Below the pieces are notes generated by a model. It had not been told where the DNA came from and did no database searches. It worked only from the letters and a program-made list of their open reading frames with translations. Position numbers and translations under genes: made by a program. A stretch of DNA of 64,000 nt, from contig LSRY02000032.1 of assembly GCA_001643675.2 (NCBI GenBank), positions 558,001 to 622,000 of the forward strand, given 5' to 3'. This stretch comes from Monocercomonoides exilis PA203 (Eukaryota > Protista > Preaxostyla). Positions 16,952-36,199 of the stretch are shown here, in pieces. How positions within the stretch are numbered: position 1 is the first letter of the stretch; each line of letters opens with the position of its first letter.

Positions 16952-19900
16952 TTAAAGCTCGTCTTTGTTTGGTGGAAGTGGAATTTGCTTTTGTTTTGGT
17001 GTTTCTGGAACCGTTGTAGTATTGATATTGACGCCAAGCTTTTGCTCGAGAGTTAAAATCTTTTCATGGTATATGTTCCAATCCTAAAATAAGAAACATG
17101 ATTAAATAATTACATTTAATTGTTTTACAAATTTCGAGTTATTAATATTTGAAAAAAAAATAAAAAAAAATTCATACTGGAATTGCACGTTTGGCATATG
17201 CCAGTTTGTGTTCCTTTGTTCTGGGATTGTTGCACAGATCGATTGTCCGTGCCTTTTCTTGTGTCTCGTCCGAGCACCACGACCCGCACCAGAGCCAGTT
17301 TTGGTCGAGTGAATAGATGGGGATGACATCCTGGAGCATATTTGGCAGGTCTTGATCTAAGTTGGAGAGAGAATTCTTGTCAAGTGCATGCTCTTCATAC
17401 GTCTCTCGCAAATAGTCGCCGGCGCCCATTGAACGGAACAGGCCGAGATCAACAGCAAACAAAGCGGAAATGTGATATGGCTTACCATTCAGCTTTGACT
17501 TCCAATAGCCAGTCTGTAATCATTCAGTTTGAAAGATGATAATGTTGCATGGTTTTGTTCAATTTAGACAAAAAGAAAGTAAGAAAAACAAAAGAGATAA
17601 GTGTAAAAGCAATGGTATAAATGGAAAAGTTTAAAATATAAATAAAAAAGGAAAAATCTAAACAAACTTCCCAAAATCTGTAAGATGCCATTTCTGGTCT
17701 GTTGCTGCAGAAAGGTGTGAATGCATATGGCGCCCCTTTCATATCCAGCTCCATCAGCTGCATCATATCAGTCCTGCACACATTGTCTGCGTCCACAAAG
17801 ATGACCCGCTCCACATCCAGCGGAAACAGCACGTCTAGAAACAGGATCTTCATCGCCCACACCGTCCGCATCTTTGTCGTGGGACGTGTCAGCCAGCCAG
17901 GCCACACGTAGTCCACAAACTCGTAGTCAAACCCGAACTCTGCAGCCATCTTGGGAAGCGTGCGCCGAAACAGCGGAGAAGTCACTGAGCCGATGAACCA
18001 GAACTTCACCCGCTGCTTCGTGTGGTCGACAACAGACGTCATCATAATTTTGGCCAGGCGCTCGTAGAGATGTCCCGAGCAGATGGTGAAGATGTGGATG
18101 GCCGGCTTTGGCGTTGCTGGGACATGTTCAGAAGAAGATTGAGACATGGAAATTGATTGAGATGACTCCAAAGAAGAAGAAGAAGAATGTGATGGAGGAG
18201 GAGGAGAAGAAGAAGAAGATTTCCGATTTGATGAAAGTGCATCAGCTTTGGCAGGTGTAGTAGCATTTCCTTTTCGCATTTTCGCAAGCAAGTTCCTCAA
18301 AAAGCTTTTTGTCAGCTCGAGCCAACCTTCCACTTTCCGTTCAGAACTTGAAAGAGCACCACCGCCATTTACACTGTTTCCTCCGCTGATTGAGTCCTTC
18401 ATCAGCTTGTACAAGTTGTGCTTCCTCTCCAGCGCATTCACCCGCACATCCAGCGACAGCCCGTCCCATCCTCTGATCATCACCTTCATCGACTGCCGGC
18501 TGCTGTGCAGATACTCTCCTCCTCCCTTTCCCACAGCTACACTTCGGCTTGTGTGTCTGATGTCTGGCTTAACACTCTGAATTGGCGTGGCAGAGACAGA
18601 GGCAGGCTCGGAGTCTGTGCGCATCTGCAGAGAAAGCGGAGTGACGCTGAGGAAGGCCATGTAATCAGACAGGGCTGGGGCAAGTGACAGCGTGTGCACA
18701 CCAGCAGAAGGAGTGGAAAGTTGGAAATAGCCAAGCTGGCTCATGATGACTGTGGTGGAATTGAAGATTGCTTTGGTTTGAGCAGATGGCACAGGGACAA
18801 TGGAAGATGTGTTTTGATTGTTGCTCATTTGACTGTTATTTTTTGTGTCTTTTTTGCTTTCATTTCTGCTCACAGAAAGAGACAAGATGTTCCTGTTGAG
18901 TTCTTCAGGTGTCTCAGTCACAAGAGAAAGAGGAAGGCCAGCAGCTGGTCTGTCGTAGATATCCAGTGCATGTCCGTGTATCACAAATCGGTCTATTGCA
19001 TATACCGCTTTCACTACACGTGGCTCATCTGAGGATAAAAATAGAAATTTTAGAAAAGAATAAAAATTATTTATTTGGGAAAAAAAATATCAAAAGCATT
19101 TAACAGTTGGTAGTTTTAAGAAATAATGCAGAAATTTTTTTCATTGGTTTAAAAGCCGAATGAATATTGATAATTAAATTTATTAAAAATTCAAGTGAAA
19201 GAAAAAACAAACCGCTTGTTTCTGAATCGAACTTTATGTTGTCCAGATCGTCCTTTGCCTCCTTCTGCACCACCATCCACCCCATCGTTGCCTGATGATT
19301 GAGGGTGAACACAAAGTGCGGCGGCAGATCTTCAAACAGCACTTTCACGCTCCTCTGCAGCTTTCCTGTCTTCTCATCAAAAGTCAAGGGAGATGGTGCC
19401 ACGTAGTGATAGAACGACGCCATAGGCATCGATGATATGGTCGTTGGGGGTGTCAGAACCAAAGTCGAGTTCTGCATCCAGCGGCCAAATTGATTGCGGA
19501 GAAGCACAAGCAAAGAAATCAGCGGACGCTGCGCCATGTTCATCGGATCGATTGCGGCAAACACATTCAACAGTGCTGGAACAGCTGCAGAAGATGAACC
19601 TGCTGCGAGATCTGATGCTTCTGTGTTCAAATTCTGCTGATCTGCTAAGATTTCCTGTGGAGACGAATCGTCTTCGACTGTGTTGTTCTCTTCTTCGTCT
19701 GATGAAGCGCTTGCTTCTTTTTCGTTTTCATCCAGTTTTGCTTCTTCTGTTGTTGAATTTCTTTGTTTAGCTTCTTTTGCATCCTCTTTCTTCTCCTCTT
19801 TCTTCTCCTCTTTTGATTCAGGCAAGTCCTCCTTTGGCATCATCGGGCACGAATAGCGGAGGTTCGAGAACACAATTGCTGTCTCTCTTTGGATTGCAGT

Positions 19901-22900
19901 TGCACGCGGCCTCAGATGGCAGTGCATTCCCTGCACATCACACAGCACTGAAACAAGAGAAGAGCCATCGTCATACACTCTCTTCAGCAAAAGATCGTCT
20001 GTCTCATTGTCATCACTTTCAACACTGTTGACTTCTTCTTTGGAATTGATCTTGTTGTTTTTATCTACTTTATCTGCTTCAGCTTTATTCTCTTCCTCTT
20101 CTTTCTTTGTCTTCTTTGAGCCTTCAACAACCTTATCAGCTCCGAGTTTCATCCTTTCGATCAGCTTCTTCTCCATCCATTTCTCGTTCAACAATCCTGT
20201 CAGCCTCACTGCCTCGTCGTCTACAAGCTCTTCTCCTTTTTCAACCAGATTGCGCCACAAAGGCAGCCAGCGGTTGAGCATCTCCCACGACTCAACGTGC
20301 TTCATCCCAGATTTGTCCAGAAGCGACCACAAAGCGGCATCGAAGTCAGGCGCAGAACGAGAGGAATAATGAGGATTTTCGTATAAGCCGAATTCCAATG
20401 GAATCGCACATTCATCTGTATAAGCGTTGGCATCTCTCACATGCAGCGGGTGTGTATCATGGAGTATTTTCGAGTAATACTCCACACACGAATATTGCTT
20501 CACCTTCGCTTCAGACCACAGAAGCGGGCGAACCAAACCGTTTGTAATCAGAAATGCAGCAGACAGCTTCTCACATGATTGCACTTTGGCTTTCATTATT
20601 ATCACTTCATTCCCCAAAAACGGTTGAGTCAAATCCATTTCGCGTATTTTCTGGCGATGCAATTTGAGTGTGTTTGTAAGAGATGCCATTGTTTTCTTGT
20701 CGCCCGATGCAAGCAATTCAACTTTTGATAAGATCTTTCTGAGCCATTCGTGTTTAACTTGGCTCTCGTTATTATCAGCATCAACTGAATCCTCATCCTT
20801 TCTGTATTCTTTCACATTCACCAATGAATTCCACTCAGAAACAGAAACACCAGCCTCTTCAACACTCCATTTCTTCAAAGTGTCCAAAACAGTCTCCTTT
20901 GAAAAAGCTGAATGAACTTCGCCGGATGGACTGACTGAGGCGTCAAGCAGCGCCAAAACATACGACTGAGTCAGATTCATTGGCACTCTGTCGATTGTCT
21001 CAAGGAACAAAGACGGGAAAGAAAGCTGGTTGGCTTCGGTGGCGTAAAACAGGAACGCCAAACGAGACACACCTGCAGTCATTTCTGAGACTGTTTGTAT
21101 GGCTGTTGCGATGTGGTGTGCATCTGTTGGATCAATCACAAGGAAATGTGTCAGAGGAGCAGAGCAGTTCAGCAGCCGGTTCTTTATGTTTGAAGTCCTC
21201 TTTTCTGATTGAGTGCTGGCTTCTTGCGACTGATCCAAAGAAGATGCTGATGATGACGACGACATGAGCAGTTGACGTGAAGGCGGATACACAAAAGTTG
21301 ATTGGTGTATCAGCGATGCCAAATATGCGGATGACAGAAAGTGTGCAGCTGAGTTTGGATTTGAAGACGGCTGTGCAAACGGCGAAGACAAGTAGATATT
21401 TGGCAGTCTTCCAGTTTCCGAAGATGGCAAAGACTTCTCAGCGCCCCACTTCTCTTCCTCAGCAGTCGTCTCAAACAGCACATTTCGACGCAGCGGCACG
21501 TGGCTGGCGAGTGGCATTGGGTCGAATTGCCCCAGTGTAACGAAGTGATTGCCCTCTTTTCCTTTCGACCGGCGGAACAGGAACTCCCACTCTTCTGTTT
21601 CAAAGGCTGCACGCCTCACCCTCCGTGATGCATCAGACGCAGACGGATTGAGGAAGCCAGCGTCATCTTCATCATCTTCATCAGCTTCGATGTCGTGCAG
21701 CTCTTCCTGTAGCTTCTTGATTTGCAAAAGCTCCTTCCGTGTCAGTGTGTCACCCAGCTTTTTAAGCTCCTCTAGTCTTCTCAGCAGCTTTTCTCTCTTT
21801 TTCCTCTTCTCCTCATTCACTTTCTGCATCACTTTCTCTTTCTCTGTCATCACATCGTCCAATGCCACTGCCCCAAGCTGTCTGCTGCTGCGAAAGACAG
21901 CTTCAGGACTGGTTGCTTCCCAGATCTCCTCCACAACATCATTTCCCCGATTCTCCGGTCTGAAAATTGGAGGAAGGGCAAGTCCATCTTCTTCGTTGTC
22001 AACAGATTGCTTCTCTTGATTGCTCTCTGATGATTCTGAGTGTGAAGAAGAAGCTGCTTTGTCAAAAGCTCTGTTTATCTCCAGCAGCTTCCTCTTTTCA
22101 GCTGCAAGTGCATGAGGCGTGCGCAGGTTTATTGACCGCGACACAATGAGGAAGCGCAGCAAGTCGTACTCTTTCATCGCCAGCGTGCCAATTGAGGCAG
22201 AAATGTCTTCGGTTCCGCACAAAATCCCGTTCAGAAACATCGACGGAACAGGAACATGAGTCTCCTGCAGCGTCTGCTTCACTTTGCGCAGCTCTTTCTC
22301 CACATCTTCGAAGGAGCCGTTCACTGCCATTTCAAACTCGTCGCGTGTCATCATGTTTGTTCGTGTCTCGTTGCCGCGCAGGCCAACCGTCTTCGCACCG
22401 TTGATGCGATACCACCGCTTCACTGCAATAGCTTCCACATCCTTCACGAGCAGCCCTCTTTTCTCGATCTCATTTTTCGTGTTGGTCTGCTGCAGCGACT
22501 TGTACGAGCGATACCACGCCTGCTCCACAATCAGCGCTGCATCGACTGAGCCGAAGCACTTCGAATGGTAAGTCCACCATCTGGCCAGCCTTTCAGACTC
22601 AGAGGGTGAGTCGACCACTTCATTTTCAGTATCAACAATGTGTGTGTTTGAGCCAGTGCGAGTAGGGACAATAGGCACAATGGCGAATCGAATGGGAACG
22701 CCTCGTCTGATGAGGTTGAGGATAATGGAGACTGTCTTGACGCTTTCTGGCTTGTGGAGATCGACAAATGCGCTGACAACAATAAGATTCTTTTTGATCT
22801 GTGGAAACATTCCAGAGGGAAGACGGATGAGGAAGTTCGGGTCCTGGATCCACATAGCAAAGCGCTCATCGTGCTCGATGTTGTTGAGGTAATACAACTC

Positions 22901-24697
22901 CGAAGGCGGTCGGATGGCTGTGCGGATGCTGAGCAGCGAAAAGGCGTTGTGGGAGTGCATAAGAGGCGTGTTCATCATCCCTTGGATAGCTTGGTCGTTG
23001 AGAAGCATTGGAAACACCGCAGAGCTTGCGACGCTTTCTGCTGCAACACTGCCGAGTCCGATTTCATCCACAAGTGACGATGCATGTGCCAGTTCGGCAG
23101 ATGCCTCGTCCACCAAGTTCCATGCAGAGAGCGATTGGCTCAGCTCTCTTGTGTCCAGTATACGCCCGTTGATCATCAGATATCCCTCCAGTGCTGAGTA
23201 GTGCTGTCGCTGCTGCTCCATCATCCGCACGAATGTTCTGTTGGGGCTGAGATGCACAATAGACGGGGCAGCAAGTGGCAAAGCTGATGTTATGCGCTGC
23301 AGAGTACCGAGCGGATCATCTGAAGAATAAATATGGTATGCTGCCTTCATTCCGAAATCCTTTGTCAGCGCCAATGGCAGATGCTTGGAAAGAGCAACGG
23401 CTACAAGTGCTGAACGAAGACGGCCCAGTGGGGATTCTGCAGGTACTGCAAATGGTTTGCCCTTTTGGTAAGTTTCATTGTCCATCCAGAAATCGATCGT
23501 ACGCTCGTGTGTTTTGTTTGCAGAGCTGTTTCCTGTGCTGATGAAGTGCGATAAATTGGCAAGATTGGGGTGGTTGCGTGCAATGCGCTGGATGTCTATT
23601 CCAAGAATAGGTTGATTGTATAACGGATCTGTTGCAATAAGATACTGTTTTGAGAAACTTTTTCTTTTTGAATATGGATTGGAATCTTCATTTGGATATT
23701 CAGAAGAAACATTTGTGCTGTTGCTCGTGCGACTTGCTTTTGTTGAACGCGCTTGAGTGTCGCTGAATGTGTATTCTGAATCTCGAACAGCTAATTCTAT
23801 TCCGTACCCTGGAACATCCATTGGCTCTTCTGATCCATCATTCGTTTCACCATTTGTAAAATTACAACGGCTATGCCGAAAGACAATTAAAAATGGAACT
23901 GCTCCATTGTTATCAATTGATATTTCTTTTTGTACTTTAATCAGTGAAGAAACCCATTTATAAACAAGTGGATCATCAAAATTTCCATAAACGTGAACTA
24001 TTGTCAAAAATTCTGGTTTCACATACGGATTTAATGGAATGACATGATCGTTGTCTGTTACAAGAGGAAAATTGTTGAAAGTTTCTTGAAATTCTGAATT
24101 TTTCCTTTTTAATTTTTCCTTGTTTTCATAAATACGAGAATGCAGAGATGTTTCCAATGCATTCAGATCGAAAAATATTTCTTCCTCTTTTCCGAGTAAT
24201 GCATAATCTGCTGAATACTTATTGTCCAACGAGTCATTCATTTTTAAATTGCTAGTATCATCATTTGTTTTTGAATGAATTGAAAGCGTCGCAAATGCAT
24301 GAAATGTTGATGGAAATGAATTATTTCTTGATTTGGAAAGATGGCTTTGCAAGATTTGCTTTGAAAATTGATCAAGAGATTCCACAATAACTGTTTTTGA
24401 ATGAAGAGATAATTTTGCTTGAAGAGAAGCGCATATAGCTTCTGAATGCGCTTCAGTTTTTAAAAAATCTATTGTAAAATCATAAATCTCTTTTTCATCT
24501 TTTGTAGAAAAATTGCTTTCATGAAATTTGAAAAAATATTTCCAAAACAAATTCTCGTCAAAGTCACTTATAATTTCGCTAAGTTCAGATGCAATTGATA
24601 CTGAACTAAATGGAGCTTGAGTAGATACGACAATAGATCGATCTGATAAGGAAAAAGCATACAAGATTCCAGCAAAAAAAACAAAATAAAAAAGCAT
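16952..24697 (-). CDS. UGGT: UDP-glucose:glycoprotein glucosyltransferase (GT24), 4 exons
   Basis: Signal peptide; [54 protein letters not shown] (DxD), [25 protein letters not shown] and [12 protein letters not shown]. The last exon ends ...NKDEL*. Confidence 0.95.
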
Positions 24698-24823: not shown

Positions 24824-26187
24824 TTATTCCTTCTTTTCTTCTTCTTTTCCTTTTTCTTCAATCTCTTGCTTCACTTCTTTATCTTTCGTTTGTGTTTTGT
24901 TAGAAGGCGATGGAAACAGAGAAAGCCAACCATTTTTCACTGAAAGAAGGCACATTCTTGAAATTAACCCACTAAGTTGGACCATATCATCAGCCCCATC
25001 AAGAAGGACCAATTGAGCTTGACCAATTTCTCGCAATAGTAAAAACTTCATTTCTTCTTCTGGAAATGGTAAGCGTGGAATAAGATAAAAAAGAGTTCCA
25101 ACAATGTCCATCCCGGAAAAGCCCTAAATGATATTCAATATTATGCACATTTTTTGTCCAAACGTTTTAGAGGGAAAAAATGAGTAATATTTTCATAAAA
25201 TGAAATTAAAAGCAAAAAGTGAAAACATCTAGTTTTTATTTCTTTTTAACTTCACTCATAAACATACCTTTCCCTTCAAATAATCAACAATTTCAAGTGC
25301 ATTATTTAGTTGCGCAGTAAGACAGTACTCAACTAACCGCCTAACAATTTCTGGATGTGGTTGATCACAGACTTTAAAGACAGATTCTGTGTCCACACGT
25401 CCAAATCCATAGAAAGTAGACTGTAGATTATTTATTGCTTGACGCATGTCACCTTGAGCAGTGAAAATCAAAGCACCCATTCCAGCTTCGTCGTATGGAA
25501 TCTAATGTGTACAAGGAGAATGTAATAATATACAAATTATTACATTAATTTTTAAATGAAAAAACAAATGTAAATTACTTAAATTCAGACCTTCTCTGCT
25601 TCTGCAATTTGAACTAATTTTCTAAGAATATCTTTATCTGAAAGTCGCGTAAATCTCAAAATTGCACAACGACTATTCATTATTTTTTTGTTTGCACATA
25701 TTTTCAAATAAGAAAATAAGAAATATGCTAAAAACCTTTGGATTGGTTCAATAACTTGGGCTGAATTGTTGCAAGCAAGAGCAAATCGAGTTGTATCTGA
25801 GTACAACTCCATAATTCTCCTGAGTGCTTGTTGAGCACCATCTGTCATGCTGTCTACTTCATCAAGAATGATAATTTTTTGACTTCCTGGAGGGAGTGTT
25901 ACTTTTTTTTGTGCAAAAGTTTTTATTTTATTCCTCACAACGTCAATTCCACGTTCATCAGATGCATTTAATTCGTAAACTGCTTCTTTGTATTGTGGAC
26001 CTAAAAGAGCCCGAGCTATGCAAAGAACGCAACTCGTTTTTCCAATTCCGGGTGGCCCAGATAAAATAATATTTGGAATTGAACCTTCTTTAATTGTGAT
26101 TCGTAATCTGTCAACAGCAGCTTGATTTCCAACAACATCTTCAAGAGTTTTTGGTCTGTACTTTTCAAGCCAAACTTCTTGAGCCAT
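24824..26187 (-). CDS. RFC2: Replication factor C small subunit 2 (yeast Rfc4 type), 4 exons
   Basis: WLEKYRP, Walker [39 protein letters not shown], Walker B ILDEVD, SRC motif, [11 protein letters not shown] and CDQPHP. Confidence 0.93.
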
Positions 26188-26578: not shown

Positions 26579-28332
26579 CTACGAGTCGCTCGAAAGAGGC
26601 ATCACAAGAAACAGCGCAAGGATGTTGCGCCTCACAACAAGCTCGCCCTTCTGCCTGTCGGAGAACGACCCCGACGTGAGCATCGTCTCCAGCCGCGCCT
26701 TCTCCGCCTCCACATACCCCAGCCCTTCCTTCGCTGCACGCTCAATGTACCGCTTGTACTGCCCTGCCACATACCGCGACTTCACATGCGCATCCACCGC
26801 TGCCTCCGCCTGCCGCACCGCCTCACCCACACTCGGCGGCGCCTTCTTCATCCCCAGCTTCTTCCCCTTCCTCTTTCCCCCTTTCTCTTCTCTTTCTTCT
26901 TCCCCATACTTCTTCTTCAGATTCTTCTTTCGCGGCACAATCGGGTCTTTCTTCTCCTCTCCTTTGCTCGCCTCTTCCATCTCCTCTTTCTCTTTTTCCG
27001 TTTCTCTTTCTCTTTCTTTTTCTCTTTCCAGCTCCTTTTCCTTCTCCTCCTCTTCCTCCTCCATCTTCTCAATCTCCTCTTCTGTCATCGGCAGCGGCGT
27101 TTTTGTCAGTGCATGCGACAGCACCACCAGCGGCTCTGCCATCTCACTCACAACCCCAGCGCTGCTCCCCACCCCTCCTCCAACAGCCCTCCATGTCCCG
27201 CTCTGCTCGTTCACAAACTGCAGCAGCGGCACCGCCTCCTTCTCTCCTCTGTACGTGATGATTCTCATTCCCTCCTTTGTGATTGCTGTGTAATAGTCAT
27301 CATCCTCCTCCTCCTCTTCTTCTTCTTCTTGTTTCTCTTCTTTCTCCTTCTTCTCCCCTTCACTTGTGTTTGTGTTTGTGTTTGTGGTTGCGCTTGCATC
27401 TGCCTCCTTCTTTGCCTTCTCAGCTGTGGGTGTGCCGACTGCATGCTCCCGCACAGCCGGGAAGAACTTGATCGTGGGGAATCCAGGAATGCCGTACGGC
27501 TCCACAAAATCGCGGTATGCGCTCGCATCGATCGACGCTATCGTCACGTTGTCGCCCGGCTTGAACGAAAGCCCCACAATCTCCAGCTGCGGCTTCAGCT
27601 TCTTGCAGTGTGCGCACCAAGGCGCCGTGAACGCCACAAGCACATTCTCCGTCCGGTTCATCACCACCGCCTCGAAGTTCCCCGGCGTCAGCGTCTTCAC
27701 AAACGAGAACTTCGGCCGGCGCACAATCCCTATCTTCGGCAGCAGAAAGTCCTTCAGCCCTTCCACCGACCGTTCTCCCTGGAACTCCTCCCACTCCGCC
27801 CCGCCCCCCGGGTAGTACCTCAGCGTCGGGTACCCCTCGATCGACTGGAAGTCGCACGTCTTCCCCTGCCGCGAGCAGTCCACCTCCGCAATCGTCATGT
27901 TGTCCTTGTACTTCTCAAAAAACACCCCCAGATCCTCGTACACCGGCGCCAGCTTCACGCAGTGGTGGCAGCTCGGCGAGAAGCTAAAAAACCCACAGCA
28001 TCCACGGATGCGAACATTAAAACGCGCAAGCACGGGCAAATGGCACAGAGAAAAAGAAAACCAAAAAGAATGAATGAAACACAAACGAAAACAAAAATGT
28101 CAAAAATGCAACAAGTCACGCTCTCTCAGCACGCAAAGAAAAAATGAAAACATGAAAGCAGCTCCCACCCTGCCCCTCATCACAAAATACAAAATCAAAA
28201 AACTGCAAAATACAATTTCACAAATATATGGCCTTTTTCCGCTGCATCCGGAAATGTCTCGTCTGTCAGCTTCACCACGCTGCTTTTCCCCTCAATCTGC
28301 ATCCATGTCAAAGCAACTACTGCCCACAACAT
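26579..28332 (-). CDS. Protein disulfide isomerase, ERp38-type (two thioredoxin domains plus ERp29c-like helical C-domain), 2 exons
   Basis: Exon 1 MLWAVVALTWMQIEGKSSVVKLTDETF...IFVKF is spliced to FSPSCHHC...GYPTL. Second domain TAPWCAHC...GFPTIKFF. C-terminus GYVEAEKARLETML...RRNILALF. Confidence 0.9.
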
Positions 28333-29817: not shown

Positions 29818-32800
29818 TTACTTGTAATACATAGCACCACCTGAAATATCTTCCAAATCCGCTGATTTGATGTGGTTCTTCTCGCTTTCAGGAATGGTCT
29901 CTGCGAAAATAAGATCTTCGTCCGTAAAATGAGTGTCAAAGAGAGCAATCAGCCTTCGTTTTCCGATAGCTATGGCAGGCTTGTTGCTTGACCGAAGCTG
30001 ATCTCCAATCAGCGTCAGCCTCTGCCTCAAGAGGATATGCTCTTGTTTATGCTTCTCTAAGCCTGCATAGCCCCGTTTCTCCATCTCTTTCTCTTCTTCA
30101 GTAAACACAGTCACCAGCGTCGTTGCCAGCTGCTTGAAAAGAGTGGACACGATGTCCAGGTGCTCGTGGTGCTTGATTGAAGTGAGAAGCTGCTGGGCAG
30201 CATCCAAAATGCTATCTCGTCCATTGTCAAATGGCTTGTATCCTGTTATCATAGACTGCATCATCTCTATTTCTTTCTCGTTCTCATCAATCGGCAACAG
30301 TTCGATCAGCTTCGCAGACACATGGCGAATAAAAGCGACTTGATTGAGCCACGACATCGAATTCAGAAACAAAGAAACGAGGTAGATCACACACATAACA
30401 GCAATCACAATAATCATAATCGTTTTAGACTGCTCAACCTCTTGTTTGCCTGCCTCCAGCACAGAGTTTGTCATTTTGACAACTGCATTGTTCAGATCTT
30501 CTCGCATGGCCGACAAAATGAATCGTGGCTCCGCTGTCAATGCATTAATAGACGTAATGTCCATCTTTTGAATCCTTTCAACGCCAACCCTCAGCCTCGA
30601 TAGAAGAGAAGAGAAGCCGTATATGTCTCCAACTATCCCGTACATCCGCTTTGGATCAACTCCTGAGCAGTCTTCGCCTTCTTCCAAAATGCACTTGGTC
30701 TTCTTCAGCAGACTTTCTCTGTTCAGTTCTTTTTCCATTCTTTTCACCACAATGTCGTCGTAAGTGGAGTCATTAGACACAGTGTAGATAGAGTCTCCAA
30801 AGTGGCAGTCCATATGAACCGTCTCAAAATAGCGCGAGAGGTCCAGCATCAGCCGTCGATACACCTCTGGATCTGCGGAGCAATGAGAGGAGTCGTGGAG
30901 AACAGGATTCAGCGAACGCGGGAACGTGATGCTCTGATCAGTCTTCAGCACGGCTGTTGGCTGTATCATTGCCATTGTCATGTACATGATCTGAAACAGG
31001 ATGGATGAACGCATTCCAGAGAGAATGATGTTTGCTGAGATTGGCTTGTATCCAATCACACAGACAACTACAATTACGATAGGCACAATGACAGCAACAA
31101 CACCAAGTGACACAGATAAGAATGTATCGAAGTACATTCTTGTTGGAATGGGCGATGGAAACTGCTTGTAGGCCGCATCCAGCGCCTCCACATCTTTCTC
31201 AAGTGCTTCTTCCCATTGGGTATCTTCAATCGCATTTCTAACCAGGCCAATCTGCTTGTCTCTTTCGGCATCTTCGTCGTCGTCATAAGCAACTTGAGGC
31301 TTAAGATATGGCACTGATCTCTGATCCAAATGTATTTCAGGCTTTGCTTGAGTGTGCGGTGAGTCGTTGTTAATTGACTGCATCTCTTCAGTCGGCTGGT
31401 GCTGTGCTGTACCAAGATATTGTGGTAGTATCGGCTGGGCAATCGGAGACACGACATTCTGATATACAGGCCTCGGAGACACAGAATAGCGCATGGACGG
31501 AGAAAGCATTCCCGCCGGGCTTAGAATTGATCCTTGCTCGTATCCCACTGTCGACCCCTGAGACGACCACACCCCTGTGCCACTGTGCATGTGGCCGCCC
31601 AGCGAGCTGTCCAGAGTGAAGTTCGTAGGCACAGACGTCAGCGTCTGGACTGTTCCGGAATATGTCTGGCTGTTCAGGTGCTGCATGGGATTCTGAGTTG
31701 ATCCAGTCTGCTCGTTGAACATCAGAGAGTTCACAGCCTTGTTTGCAACAGGAGAGTGCATCCGTGGTTGAGGAGACAGACGACCAGCTGCATCCGTTGA
31801 TTGCTGCTGCTGCCCTACATTCATGTCCGCCCCACTCTTCTCGCTTCGCCCAGTTATGTTGCCTGCTCTCATCGCAACTGGCTGCTTTGCTCCGGTTGGC
31901 GGTTCTGCCAAGCTCGAGGGTGTTGTAGCCATTCCGGTTGAAGCATCGGGGAGTGGAAGATTGAACGACATCTGCGGGCTCATTGCAGGGTCCAAGCCTG
32001 TTGGATACAGCAAGTTGTTCTCTTGTTGATATATCGAAGGAGCGTTGTCGTTCATGTGGATCATCGGCTCACCAGAATTCTGGCTGTTCTGCTGCATTTC
32101 CTTGTCCTGTTGATTGGATTCCATCGGGGCAAAAGGAGGGAAAGAAGAATACAGCTCAGCTTTTGCAGCTGACACGCCTGGCAGTTCGCGAACAGACTCT
32201 TCAATAATCATCATCTTGTGCTTCTCAGAGGGCTCGTCGCGTGTGTTTGACTCTGAGCCTTCCTCTCCGCTTCCTCCATCAGTCCACCGCCCTTCACCAT
32301 CTGTCGTGTCTTCAGTAAACTGCTTGCCTCCCATCTGATTCTGAGTTGTCAGCGATATGAGAGTAGTGTCGTCTCCATCGCCGTTTTCGTTGTTCAGAAG
32401 CCGCCGAATCACATTTTGCATCTTCATTTTGGGAACATCGAGCATCACGTGATACGCTTCGTGTCTCTCATTTTTGAGTACTCTTGTGTATCTCATATAT
32501 GTTATGCCTATTGTAGTTGTCACAGGCACAATTGTGAGGCAAAGAATCAGCACAAATGCAATAATGATGTTGTCGCAGTCCTGGTTCATTATGTTCCAAT
32601 AAGACATGATTGCCCGCTTCGCCCCGTCCAAAATAGGGACAAGGGTGTTGAACAGAATGTACTGAATGTTCGGAAGATAGTCAGGAAAAGTAGGACGCTC
32701 TGTCATTGTTGACTCTGCAAGCTGCCGAGACGTCTGCGACAGCGCGGCGAGCACTTCGAGCATCGACGACGGAGAGTGCATCTGCTTCTTCTCATCGATC

Positions 32801-35476
32801 ACTTCAATGACCGACCCGTCAGGCTGCGTCTCGTTCTTCAGCTTGAATATGAACGTGTATGTTTCAATGTCCGACGTCTCCCACGGCTCCAAGTTGGATG
32901 TCATGTCATACACATCCGACAGCATCGACGTCATTCGCTCAGAGTTCTTCGACAGACGGCGCTTCAGCTCGTCGACTGGCACAAGCGAAGCCCCCCACCC
33001 GTCGGCTGGTGCAACATACCGGAAATGGTGCACGAAGTCGTGGACGGTGTAATAATACGTCATGACCGATGTTCTGGCAGTGATGTACGACAGATCGCAC
33101 ACCTGCCGCAGCGTATCCAGGTTCTTTTGGTAGTTCGATGAGACAACCAGATACACAACTAGCGATATTATCAGAACGGTTATCGAAAAGAAGTTCAGCG
33201 AAACAACAAGACATGTAATGAGTGTCTGGCTGACGTTGTCTTCTCCACTCGTCGTTCCGCTTGTGCTGAGCTCCGTTAGCAAAACCTTCTTCTTCTTCTT
33301 CTTCTTCCTCTTCCTCTTGTTTCTTTTAGCAGATGTGTCAATCGTTTTATGTGACCGAGAATCTGCTCCTCCCAACCCCTTCTGTCCGCCAAATGATCTG
33401 TCGAGTCCATCTCCTCCCATTCCTCTCGAAGACAGAATTTCAGACGCACCGCCATCTGGCACAGCGCTTTCCTTCTCATCCCCATCTCCGTCTACCCTGC
33501 TGCTTACAGCACTGTCTTTCTCACTGCGAATGTTGGTTGTTGAGCCTTCGTTGTTGTCACCGCTGCTTCCATTCCCGCTGTTTTTGCCAGCATCCATCTC
33601 AAACCCATCGTTCATTCCCATTGAATCGCCCGACGGGTCAACGCCTGCTGTGACTGTCGGCCCCATCGATGTGGACGTGGTTTCTTCGATCTGGTCAGCC
33701 CTGTTCAGAATCATCTCTGCTGCATCTTCGTCGTGGTAGATGTCCAACAGCAGCCGCGCGTAGTTCCGCAGCACTGTTGTGTTCTGCCCGTGCGACGCGA
33801 TGAGCTCCTCGTAGCTTTTGCGGGAAATGTACTCGTTCTTCACAATCTCATTCAGCAGGTTCGGAAGCACCCTGTAGTCTGGGTGCATCGACGTGGCGGT
33901 CTCGAAGAAGTCCTTCATTGCTTCCAGCGCCAGTTCGTAGTGAGAAATTGCCTTCGACATCAGTGTTGTGAACGTTAGAGAGTTCAGTTCATTCATCCCT
34001 CCGTCGTTTGCACCGCCTTCGCTCCTGCTGCCTTCTTTCGACTTGCAGAACAGCACAAAGCGCAAGAAGATCCCGGGAGACGACATACGCGCCTTCTTCA
34101 AAAGAGATTGAGATTTCATGTAGTTCTTCCGATATGCCTGCAAGAAAGAAGCATAGTAGAAGCACAGCTCGCTATTGTTCTTGTTTGTCTTCAGCCCTTG
34201 TGTGTACACAAAGTCTGCAAATGACAAGTGATCAAGCGAGCGGTATGAGTCGACTTGAAGAAAGCGAAGAGAAGGCTCAATCCGTTCAGGCTTGTTCATC
34301 GGTGGAAGTGAACTTGCAGCATTTTCCAATCGAGTATCGATCAACGGGTTGCCTGTGTTTGTTAACAGATATCTTCTTTCTCTGACTTCACGACCAACCT
34401 GAGGAAGAACAACAGCACTCAGCACAATTCCGACAACTAATGCAAATAACTGAAGAATAAGAGGCACAATCCATAATCCAACAGCTCCTTCAATGGCATA
34501 TCCAATCTCTCCCAGCAACCTCATACATCCAAATATGCACCATGTACTTGCTCTTAGAACGTTTCCTTTGAGCTTATAGATTGGCTGTTTCCACACAAAA
34601 TACACGACCATCCCCAAAGAAGTGCCAACTGTAACTACTCCACGCCAAAATGGCCAAGCATAAAGCATGCGCATCGCAAATACGCATCCAACCATCAAAC
34701 ATGAATCCAACGATTGCCAGGTTCCGCTAGGAGAAGACCACAGCCCTCCATGTTTTGGGTTATGATTAAAAATCATGCTTCGAATCAAGAATGCATGGCC
34801 CAACAGCAAGCAAATTGTTACAACCCCAACAGCAAATCCACTAACCGCAAATCCATCCTTAAAAAATGGCTTTTCAGTTGCGCGATATAACTGCACTCCT
34901 CCTCTTTCAAAGCAATCGAAAGATGTTATGCAATTTGTCATTAATGGAATTAATAAAACATCAAGTGTAAAATTATTCACCCAACGTAAAACTGAGATAA
35001 TCCATGGTTGTGATGAAGCAATTCTTCCAAACATTAATTGCACAACTTCAAGAAATACCATTTGAAGCGCAAAATAGCCACAACATCCATACACAACAAA
35101 TGGCAAATATTGGCCAGCAAGAAATCCGAGTGAGGTGCCATCAGGATATCCAATAAACTACAATAACAGTAAAATGAAATGCATTTGCAATATTTACAAT
35201 TATTCAATATTAAATGAAACATTTGCACACAAAGGATAAAAAATTCACTCTTTGAGAAGGCAAGTCAATACGGAAAAAGCTAATTGTAACCATTTGAAGC
35301 AAGCATATAAACCAACAAACTCCTTCCCATGCAACACTTGGATGTTTCGGTTGTTCATATAAAGGATAAAAAAATGAAAAAATGACTTCATCCATTTTGC
35401 TAAACGAATCCGTTTGAGATACATCAATCGTGAGTCCACTACTAATGGAACTCATAGATTTATTTTCTTCGGACAT
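29818..35476 (-). CDS. Large multi-pass membrane protein: TmcB/TmcC-like N-terminal TM and TPR-like region, two TM-ectodomain-TM modules, C-terminal hemerythrin-like domain
   Basis: First exon 35476-~35250 joins the 1762-aa ORF. About 9-10 N-terminal TMs; YEELIASHGQNTTVLRNYARLLLDIYHDEDAAEMILNRADQIE (TmcB/C-type helical repeat); two further TM pairs; C-terminal TG...FD...F.EEE..M...GY....HKQEH...H....D hemerythrin pattern. Confidence 0.85.
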
Positions 35477-35680
35477 TATTCCAATAAATCTCTCAGATAT
35501 ACCGTCTTTTTCAAAACTGCTAGATGATCAAACTTTCCCAAACATTTGTTTTTCAATCAAGATTATTGGATCCAATTTGCCACATTCAATCGATGTTAAT
35601 GATTGGAGATAATGTCCAAAAAATATATGTTGAGAAGCAAAAATTACACAAATTCTTATAATTTGATCAAAAAAAACAGT

Positions 35681-35753
35681 CAGGCCCGGCGGGACTCGAA
35701 CCCACAACCCCCGGATTAGGAATCCGATATGCTATCCATTGCACCACGGGCCT
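35681..35753 (-). tRNA. tRNA-Arg (anticodon CCU)
   Basis: AGGCCCG TG GTGC AATGGATA GCAT A TCGGA TT-CCT-AA TCCGG GGGTT GTGGG TTCGAGT CCCGC CGGGCCT G folds into a cloverleaf. A T8 Pol III terminator follows. Confidence 0.95.
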
Positions 35754-36199
35754 AAGGAAATCGTTTTTAAAAACTCATTATTATTCCTTATAATGAACAA
35801 TAAGATATTGATAATTCGATCACCATCAATTTATTTTTTATATTTCCTAAATGTTTATGATAATTACTCCAGGAACTTAAACATTAACCTTTATGGAATG
35901 TTATTTGGAAAAGAATGACTTTATTCTCTTTTTCAAATAATATTGTTAATAATTTGTTTTGGAGAAGAAATTCAATAAACTTTACGAAAATTCTCAATTT
36001 TATCGTTCAAACGATAAACAAATTTTCAATATTCTCGTTCAAGAATCAATGAAAGATTTGACGAATTGGATGCTTTTTTAACAGTAAAAACTGTAAAACT
36101 TAAAGTATTTTGATGCAACATGAAATAAATTTTCATAATGAAAAGTTTTGAACTTTGTTTATTGCTGTCTGCAAGAATACAAACCGTAGAAGTTGAAAC

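Follow-up and report, generated by a model that had tools for sequence, protein, structure and literature searches.

A hemerythrin-like tail with a conserved half-site on a TmcB-type membrane protein family of oxymonads

Hemerythrin (Hr) domains are already known from bacterial membrane receptors and transporters, such as DcrH and the P1B-5 ATPases, and TPR_TmcB is a catalogued Pfam domain, the TmcB/TmcC ('tiny macrocysts') name of which derives from Dictyostelium macrocyst mutants. Here we analysed a stretch of 64,000 nucleotides (hereafter the window) from the oxymonad Monocercomonoides exilis PA203 (contig LSRY02000032.1, positions 558,001 to 622,000), in which the gene MONOS_5757 encodes a membrane protein of 1861 amino acids (aa) that carries TPR_TmcB in its N-terminal half and a hemerythrin-like domain at its C-terminus. 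With moderate confidence, we interpret MONOS_5757 as a transcribed member of an oxymonad-specific, expanded TmcB-type membrane family, in which a half-site Hr would serve as a cytosolic, non-enzymatic metal-holding module.

DcrH of Desulfovibrio vulgaris (2AVK, 2AWC, 3WAQ) resembles MONOS_5757 in its succession of a transmembrane (TM) segment, an extracytoplasmic helical region, a further TM segment and a cytoplasmic C-terminal Hr. In DcrH, HAMP and MCP domains lie between the membrane and the Hr and all seven iron ligands are kept (PMC9388753), whereas in MONOS_5757 the Hr follows the last TM segment and a helix of ~26 aa, lacks two of the ligands and is carried by a eukaryotic TmcB-type scaffold with a TPR and about 10-12 TM segments. 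Pfam matched neither a HAMP nor an MCP signalling domain in it, with E-values allowed up to 1 for the exon-2 protein and up to 10 for its segments. The bacteriohemerythrins (McHr of Methylococcus capsulatus, 4XPX) and the invertebrate hemerythrin and myohemerythrin are homologous to the MONOS_5757 Hr in fold and sequence family, but they are O2 carriers made of one soluble domain and have the motif H-HxxxE-HxxxH-HxxxxD, whereas the R-VxxxE-HxxxH-HxxxxD of MONOS_5757 lies at the end of a long membrane protein. The P1B-5 ATPases are likewise polytopic and end in an Hr-like domain that lies in the cytosol and departs from the canonical ligand motif. They differ by their actuator and ATP-binding domains and by the motif H-HxxxE-HxE-HxxxxD, which is still di-iron (PMC9388753), whereas MONOS_5757 has no ATPase domain and has lost a different pair of ligands. 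The role of the P1B-5 Hr-like domain is discussed as O2/redox sensing versus iron sensing (PMC9388753). A preliminary description of this locus had brought forward fusions of bacterial Hr domains to chemoreceptors and cyclases as known, and such fusions to chemoreceptors and diguanylate cyclases are indeed documented (PMC9388753).

The TmcB/TmcC (PF25474) proteins of protists and algae start, like MONOS_5757, with an N-terminal multi-pass block followed by TPR_TmcB, and the literature searched yielded no functional paper on TmcB or 'tiny macrocysts' proteins. Among eukaryotic proteins with a hemerythrin domain, FBXL5 and the plant BRUTUS/BTSL proteins are iron/oxygen sensors. They belong to soluble E3 ubiquitin ligases and have an enzymatic output, in contrast to the membrane-embedded MONOS_5757, in which no enzymatic domain was found. 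A cytosolic Hr-like fold is what they share with it. Some of the Hr-like folds in such proteins are without a di-iron centre (PMC12022348). In the published genome analysis of M. exilis, hemerythrin comes up solely as an enzyme of oxygen stress that was gained through gene transfer (PMC6759080), while the papers on Preaxostyla genomics and on the M. exilis re-assembly make no mention of hemerythrin. We likewise found no paper on the TmcB-Hr fusion, on the size of the family or on the conserved Arg-substituted half-site.

The last ~130 aa of MONOS_5757 form a true hemerythrin fold. As a single sequence, the domain is a borderline case: PF01814 scores 20.2 bits within the whole protein, the isolated domain just reaches the cut-off with 25.3 bits, and a search against the PDB retrieves a bacteriohemerythrin at an E-value of 0.03. 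Using a profile built from 17 paralogue Hr domains (A1), the PDB matches are a bacteriohemerythrin at 4.3e-6 and DcrH-Hr at 2e-4 over its full length. The same profile gave 3593 matches at E <= 1e-3 among 1.84 billion representative proteins, where, below the oxymonad proteins, dozens of ~135-aa proteins are matched end to end with E-values of 1e-14 to 1e-9. These stand-alone proteins have the full HHEHHHD ligand set, and the two that were checked carry PF01814 and lie on gene-dense metagenome contigs. The AlphaFold2 (AF2) model of the isolated domain reached a pLDDT of 88.9 and a pTM of 0.84, and its twelve best Foldseek matches in the PDB are all hemerythrins (TM-scores 0.64-0.85). DcrH-Hr is the best structural match (TM-score 0.79-0.85; VIA-align Z 16.9, with a root-mean-square deviation (rmsd) of 2.3 over 132 residues), and hemerythrin 1HMD (Z 15.7, rmsd 1.6) and McHr 4XPW (Z 15.7) also stand above generic bundles, which reach at most 12. 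Therefore, the assignment of the C-terminal ~120 aa to hemerythrin in the preliminary description holds, since neither the profile nor AF2, Foldseek or VIA-align revealed a mismatch with the fold.

The representative library also contained proteins of 550-710 aa (P0048, P0057, P0062, P0080 and P0083) with four or five tandem hemerythrin domains, some of them with degenerate ligand sets. Two Hr domains also stand at the end of the bacterial SBP-PAS-GAF-SpoIIE sensors P0066 and P0077, of which P0077 comes from Magnetococcales.

The canonical hemerythrin motif is H-HxxxE-HxxxH-HxxxxD, in which Fe1 is bound by three His and Fe2 by two, while the Glu and the Asp form bridges between them, and Fe2 is the site of O2 binding (PMC9388753). 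In our alignment, the motif of MONOS_5757 reads R1729 - V1766xxxE1770 - H1785xxxH1789 - H1825xxxxD1830 and departs from the strict O2-binding ligand set. Conservation at these positions was calculated from 49 R-type (Arg-type) sequences from Monocercomonoides, Blattamonas and Streblomastix and from metagenome contigs:

30219-30217, minus strand: R1729, canonical His (Fe2); Arg in 100%
30108-30106, minus strand: V1766, canonical His (Fe2); variable, V in 41%, also T, Q, E, Y, S, I, A and H
30096-30094, minus strand: E1770, canonical Glu (bridge); Glu in 98%
30051-30049, minus strand: H1785, canonical His (Fe1); His in 100%
30039-30037, minus strand: H1789, canonical His (Fe1); His in 100%
29931-29929, minus strand: H1825, canonical His (Fe1); His in 98%
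29916-29914, minus strand: D1830, canonical Asp (bridge); Asp in 100%

In addition, an R-Q-R-x-T motif after H1789 (RQRLT, aa 1793-1797) is 92-100% conserved in the R-type clade and is not conserved in canonical hemerythrins. As judged from these alignments, the Fe1 half is under strong selection in the R-type clade and the Fe2 half is gone. Canonical di-iron O2 binding by the MONOS_5757 Hr is unlikely, because both Fe2 histidines are absent and the O2 side is that of Fe2. The conservation pattern of the half-site is best read as pointing to one retained metal. The O2/metal/NO (nitric oxide) sensing initially proposed is therefore weakened in its O2 part, both Fe2 histidines (R1729, V1766) being lost throughout the clade, while the Fe1 ligands are kept.

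The Arg-type clade is not uniform at the first ligand position. A subclade nested within it, comprising P0035, P0040 (MONOS_2207) and P0061 (MONOS_4271), has a His there (H-V/I-E-H-H-H-D) and therefore indicates either a reversal or a repeated His-to-Arg change. P0070 from Blattamonas shows the opposite case, R-H-E-H-H-H-D.

MONOS_5757 is not a singular gene, being one of at least 58 paralogues in the genome. In the 82.3 Mb and 101 contigs searched, there are at least 69 TPR_TmcB loci. The first two genome searches gave 52 distinct Hr-like loci. In 47 of them, a TPR_TmcB precedes the Hr-like domain by 3-8 kb on the same strand, and most of these TmcB-linked loci share a single open frame of 1600-3600 aa with the TPR_TmcB. 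A profile of a second Hr subtype added 11 TmcB loci, bringing those with an Hr-like domain to at least 58 of the 69. The TPR_TmcB sequences at C76:80403 and C1:355034 are pseudogenes with several stops.

The second subtype (alignments A3/A4) always retains the first His. At least six of its TmcB-linked genes have the complete HHEHHHD set (loci L021, L022, L026, L027, L030 and L032) and others are without the second His only. All of them carry an additional, conserved C-terminal extension of ~60 aa, which is absent in MONOS_5757. This extension (loci L021-L039, A3 columns ~195-240) shows an invariant Pro and an S-D-N-A-like motif and belongs to no Pfam family. The R-type and the second subtype are homologous: hhalign of the R-type domain profile against the canonical-site paralogues gives 97.7% with an E-value of 2e-12. 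A quick maximum-likelihood tree supports either subtype as a clade (SH-aLRT 98), with weaker support for their joint grouping (80); this tree was built from few columns and has no outgroup, hence it allows no conclusion on the donor lineage. MONOS_5757 branches within a clade of 12 M. exilis genes (SH-aLRT 99). The Hr domains of Blattamonas and Streblomastix, in which the TmcB-Hr architecture is also present, form their own clusters, and therefore the expansion of the Hr family is genus-specific. Every named R-type protein that was looked up belongs to an oxymonad, some of them being automatically labelled "hemerythrin-like domain-containing" or "putative hemerythrin". A search for named stand-alone relatives of the canonical oxymonad Hr at 1e-6 returned a single M. 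exilis fragment.

Some individual family members deserve mention. In the Blattamonas nauphoetae protein P0021 (KAK2960695.1, 3353 aa, labelled 'putative hemerythrin'), TPR_TmcB and Hr each occur twice, the Hr domains with the ligand sets HQEHHHD and RVEHHHD, and the protein looks like two tandem TmcB-Hr genes fused in one gene model. The loci C47:218864-219403 (L023) and C47:470887-471426 (L024) are truncated C-terminal copies of the full-site receptor at C47:119097-119636, with open frames of 208 and 522 aa, one of which has an internal TAG; they are likely segmental duplicates or pseudogenes.

The preliminary description further presented the hemerythrin as standing in place of a cyclase, and this part found no support. 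Our data do not show that any domain was replaced by Hr. The four cyclase loci of the M. exilis genome are distant from all TPR_TmcB loci and lie in open reading frames (ORFs) that have no TM segments, so that they provide no argument for a domain swap in which Hr would have replaced a cyclase. The sole non-oxymonad relative retrieved by the family profile is a protein of Mesostigma viride (P0170, 2107 aa), matched at 2.5e-35 over the N-terminal part. Its hydropathy shows six N-terminal TM segments, the TPR, and two TM pairs ~210-230 aa apart, a TM layout like that of MONOS_5757. In contrast to MONOS_5757, it has PAS domains behind its TPR_TmcB, and only ~85 aa, without a hemerythrin, follow its last TM segment. 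We detected no homology between the ectodomain modules of the two proteins (0.1% and 11%). When the N-terminal part is compared by language model, its look-alikes belong to TmcB-bearing clusters of Preaxostyla and Parabasalia and to one Heterolobosea cluster. Taken together, these observations fit an Hr that was added, specifically in oxymonads, to the end of an older scaffold.

The layout of MONOS_5757, with membrane segments taken from Kyte-Doolittle hydropathy only, is as follows:

34405..35323 including the intron, minus strand: N-terminal multi-pass membrane block, aa 52-333, 4-6 hydrophobic segments (Kyte-Doolittle)
33673..34020, minus strand: TPR_TmcB (PF25474), aa 462-577, E-value 3.4e-14, 53.3 bits against a cut-off of 27
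33211..33672, minus strand: low-complexity linker 1, G/S/D/K-rich, aa 578-731 (composition)
33327-33286, minus strand: poly-Lys tract KRNKRKRKKKKKKK, aa 693-706, directly before TM5 (family alignment)
32512..33210, minus strand: module 1, TM5 aa 732-750, ectodomain 1 of ~195 aa, TM6 aa 946-964 (hydropathy)
32404..32511, minus strand: conserved juxtamembrane segment 1, aa 965-1000, with LKNERHEAYHVMLDVP at aa 976-991 (32478-32431) (paralogue conservation)
31108..32403, minus strand: linker 2, aa 1001-1432, S/T/Q/P/N-rich, identity 0.24 (composition, paralogue alignment)
30364..31107, minus strand: module 2, TM7 aa 1433-1451, ectodomain 2 of ~210 aa, TM8 aa 1662-1680 (hydropathy, AF2)
30286..30363, minus strand: juxtamembrane helix 2, aa 1681-1706, with VAFIRHVSAKLIELLP at aa 1689-1704 (30339-30292) (AF2, alignment)
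29899..30285, minus strand: hemerythrin-like four-helix bundle, aa 1707-1835 (Pfam, profile A1, AF2, Foldseek, VIA-align)
29821..29898, minus strand: acidic, unconserved C-terminal tail, aa 1836-1861 (paralogue conservation)

This layout is repeated in all paralogues examined by hydropathy and agrees with most of what had been described for the protein: a multi-TM N-terminus, a TPR-like TmcB segment, a linker (G/S/D/K-rich, with its poly-Lys run) and two TM-ectodomain-TM modules are all present. The two modules had also been said to be each followed by a signalling-helix-like motif and a hemerythrin. The motifs do stand at aa 976-991 and 1689-1704, but the Hr follows the second module only, the first being followed by a low-complexity linker of ~430 aa. 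The absence of a catalytic domain was likewise confirmed, as Pfam detected no enzyme domain in MONOS_5757, Guanylate_cyc (PF00211) included.

Within the N-terminal block, which matched no Pfam family, hydropathy peaks lie at aa 52-70, 100-125, 189-207 and 315-333, and paralogues show more of them. The TPR_TmcB was also found in the genome-wide scan (C28:591673-592020), and the conserved helical region around it probably begins near aa 385. In the poly-Lys tract, K701-703 are nearly invariant in the family alignment. The TM pair of module 1 is kept in every paralogue examined by hydropathy and its ectodomain matched no Pfam family, while the LLDVPK motif of juxtamembrane segment 1 is also present in P0018 from Blattamonas. 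The AF2 model of module 2 with the tail (pLDDT 73.6) shows a long TM7 helix entering an all-alpha ectodomain with a conserved Cys pair, and TM8 extending as one helix of 70 residues (model positions 208-278) into the cytosol up to an S-x-K-L-x-x-L-L-P motif, in which S272, K274, L275, L278, L279 and P280 are invariant in alignment A2. A short loop separates this LLP motif from the four-helix bundle. The top structural matches of ectodomain 2 are the ligand-binding domain (LBD) of PilJ (Z 12.7), the Adeh_2942 sensor (Z 10.9) and the McpN LBD (Z 10.8), all below the ~13 asked for helical folds in VIA-align. The two ectodomains have no detectable relation to each other, and an internal duplication of the two modules was therefore rejected (no BLASTP similarity; hhalign 0.4%). 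With the Hr domain taken as cytosolic, the TPR and both linkers would also be cytosolic and, therefore, both ectodomains would face the outside or a lumen.

From these elements, a mechanism can be proposed. The TmcB-type multi-pass proteins of oxymonads would have acquired a hemerythrin-derived domain as a cytosolic C-terminal module, which would hold a single metal ion, with Fe(II) as the most likely candidate, or else also a second ion in a modified and weak form, but not an oxo-bridged O2-binding pair, with Arg1729 occupying the place of Fe2. This half-site bundle would be rigidly coupled to TM8 through the continuous helix of ~25-26 residues leading to the LLP motif, so that the state of the ectodomain, or the metal/redox state, could shift the packing of the bundle against the helix continuing TM8. 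Partners binding on the clade-specific RQRLT face and/or the TPR domain might then read this change of packing.

Several points weigh against this proposal. That Arg1729 points into the site is inferred solely from its alignment to His25, and a buried His/Glu/Asp/Arg network could be conserved for structure alone. Among 15 close paralogues, mean identity is highest in the TPR (0.62), with 0.55 in the Hr, 0.54 in the membrane block, 0.53 in ectodomain 2, 0.47 in ectodomain 1 and ~0.25 in the linkers. The ectodomains (0.47-0.53) are thus about as conserved as the Hr, without the signature of a 'variable sensor, constant output', and therefore the sequence is silent on which end is input and which output. 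A docking prediction for the TPR and the Hr scored 0.00, which is no evidence either way. The modelled likeness of ectodomain 2 to bacterial four-helix-bundle (4HB) sensors falls in the ambiguous Z range for helical bundles, and the location of MONOS_5757 at the cell surface is assumed.

Other explanations of the same data start from the state of the metal site. The Hr could be a metal-free pseudo-hemerythrin, a scaffold for oligomerisation or partner binding in which Arg1729 salt-bridges E1770 and D1830 and the His residues form a structural hydrogen-bonded core. This would account for the loss of two of the seven ligands with a cationic Arg fixed at the site, and the new invariant RQRLT motif suggests an interaction face; BTSL2 offers a precedent, as its Hr-like folds are closely packed and no more than two of them hold di-iron (PMC12022348). 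Nevertheless, the five remaining ligands are kept at ~100% in sequences of 25-60% identity from three genera, which is hard to explain without a metal, whereas the position of a lost ligand, 1766, drifts freely, and we consider a metal-free bundle unlikely. The opposite explanation, which we rate lower still and as rather improbable, is a working binuclear sensor of O2, NO or redox state like DcrH or Bhr-DGC, in which the two bridging carboxylates and water would hold Fe2. Both carboxylates and all Fe1 ligands are retained, the closest structures are those of the O2-sensing DcrH-Hr and of bacteriohemerythrin, the full HHEHHHD is found on the same scaffold in at least six paralogues of this genome, and the host is a microaerophile or anaerobe with an expanded oxygen-stress repertoire (PMC6759080). 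The P1B-5 ATPases, moreover, bind iron despite their non-canonical Hr motif (PMC9388753). However, the O2 site is at Fe2, its two His are absent in 100% of the clade and the Arg would repel a second iron. All characterised bacterial Hr sensors keep every ligand, the exception being the P1B-5 ATPases (PMC9388753).

The P1B-5 ATPases are also the precedent for a third explanation, being membrane transporters with a cytosolic C-terminal Hr-like domain of non-canonical motif (PMC9388753): MONOS_5757 could be a regulated transporter or channel, in which the N-terminal block performs ion or metal transport and the Hr-like tail is an autoregulatory metal sensor. The conservation of the N-terminal membrane block (0.54) and a weak language-model lead to clusters with a TRP-channel domain (0.82, below the trust level) are compatible with this, but Pfam assigns no transporter or channel family, the language-model lead lies in the chance range (the look-alikes of this block, all <0.9, are not usable) and the presence of two large ectodomain modules fits a receptor better. 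We regard it as very unlikely. A non-enzymatic, metal-holding half-site thus remains our preferred reading of MONOS_5757.

The TmcB-Hr family may be how oxymonad anaerobes sense metal, redox or oxygen. A wider and more tentative idea, which we consider possible though on the whole doubtful, is that of a signalling system specific to the oxymonad lineage, with ~60 receptors per genome that would share an Hr bundle, instead of a kinase or cyclase, as their cytosolic module. Some of these bundles would have full di-iron O2/redox sites and most would have Arg-substituted single-metal sites with a new specificity, for example for Fe(II), NO or sulfide. If true, this would represent a previously unknown class of eukaryotic receptors and a new functional form of the hemerythrin fold. 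The membrane sensing of oxygen, iron or redox state by anaerobic gut protists is a largely obscure field, and Monocercomonoides is a model eukaryote without mitochondria. The family provides a natural series on one scaffold, from full HHEHHHD sites through sites without the second His to the R-x-E-H-H-H-D half-site, which makes it testable what the hemerythrin fold does once the O2-binding iron is removed. The link to Hr is also a first functional hint for the widespread TmcB scaffold.

MONOS_5757 is a two-exon gene that fills positions 29818-35476 of the window exactly, on the minus strand, with its ATG start at 35476 and its TAA stop at 29820-29818:

35231..35476, minus strand: exon 1, 82 codons, aa 1-82 (translation, RNA contigs; identical to the database protein P0001)
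35158..35230, minus strand: intron of 73 nt, GT..AG, phase 0 (joint 35157/35231 in RNA contigs of 4 runs)
29818..35157, minus strand: exon 2, 1779 codons and the TAA stop (ORF translation; RNA contigs at 100% identity)

Because of the intron at 35230-35158, frame 1 from 35476 runs into stops, and the long ORF 35106-29818 is read in a different frame. Once the intron is removed, the translation is identical to P0001, the database entry "uncharacterized protein MONOS_5757", with 0 codon mismatches. The whole gene is covered at 100% identity by RNA contigs from 4 metatranscriptomic runs of one study (5783 letters compared), and these contigs skip 35158-35230; therefore, MONOS_5757 is transcribed and spliced. 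They place the 5' end of the transcript at ~35533, ~57 nt upstream of the ATG, and ruled out a 91-nt intron with its donor at 35248, as they show the annotated one of 73 nt. The contigs are interrupted at the poly-Lys repeat (33278-33328), which is an assembly effect, not a splice.

The genes flanking MONOS_5757 are ordinary eukaryotic ones, encoding UGGT, an RFC-like AAA protein, a PDI/ERp29-like protein and a tRNA-Arg, and this genomic context carries no information on function. The tRNA-Arg(CCT), at 35679-35754 of the window, shares the minus strand with MONOS_5757 and precedes its ATG by ~200 bp and the 5' end of its RNA contigs by ~146 bp. On the other side, the adjacent minus-strand ORFs 17524-19014 and 19100-24697 have the thioredoxin-like and glucosyltransferase-24 domains of UGGT, and are probably one UGGT gene divided by an intron. 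The RFC-like AAA ORF is located at 25585-26187. The PDI/ERp29-like thioredoxin gene occupies 26579-28084 on the minus strand. Antisense to it, the plus-strand ORF 26786-28147 (453 aa), which belongs to no Pfam family, is probably a shadow ORF in GC-rich coding sequence.

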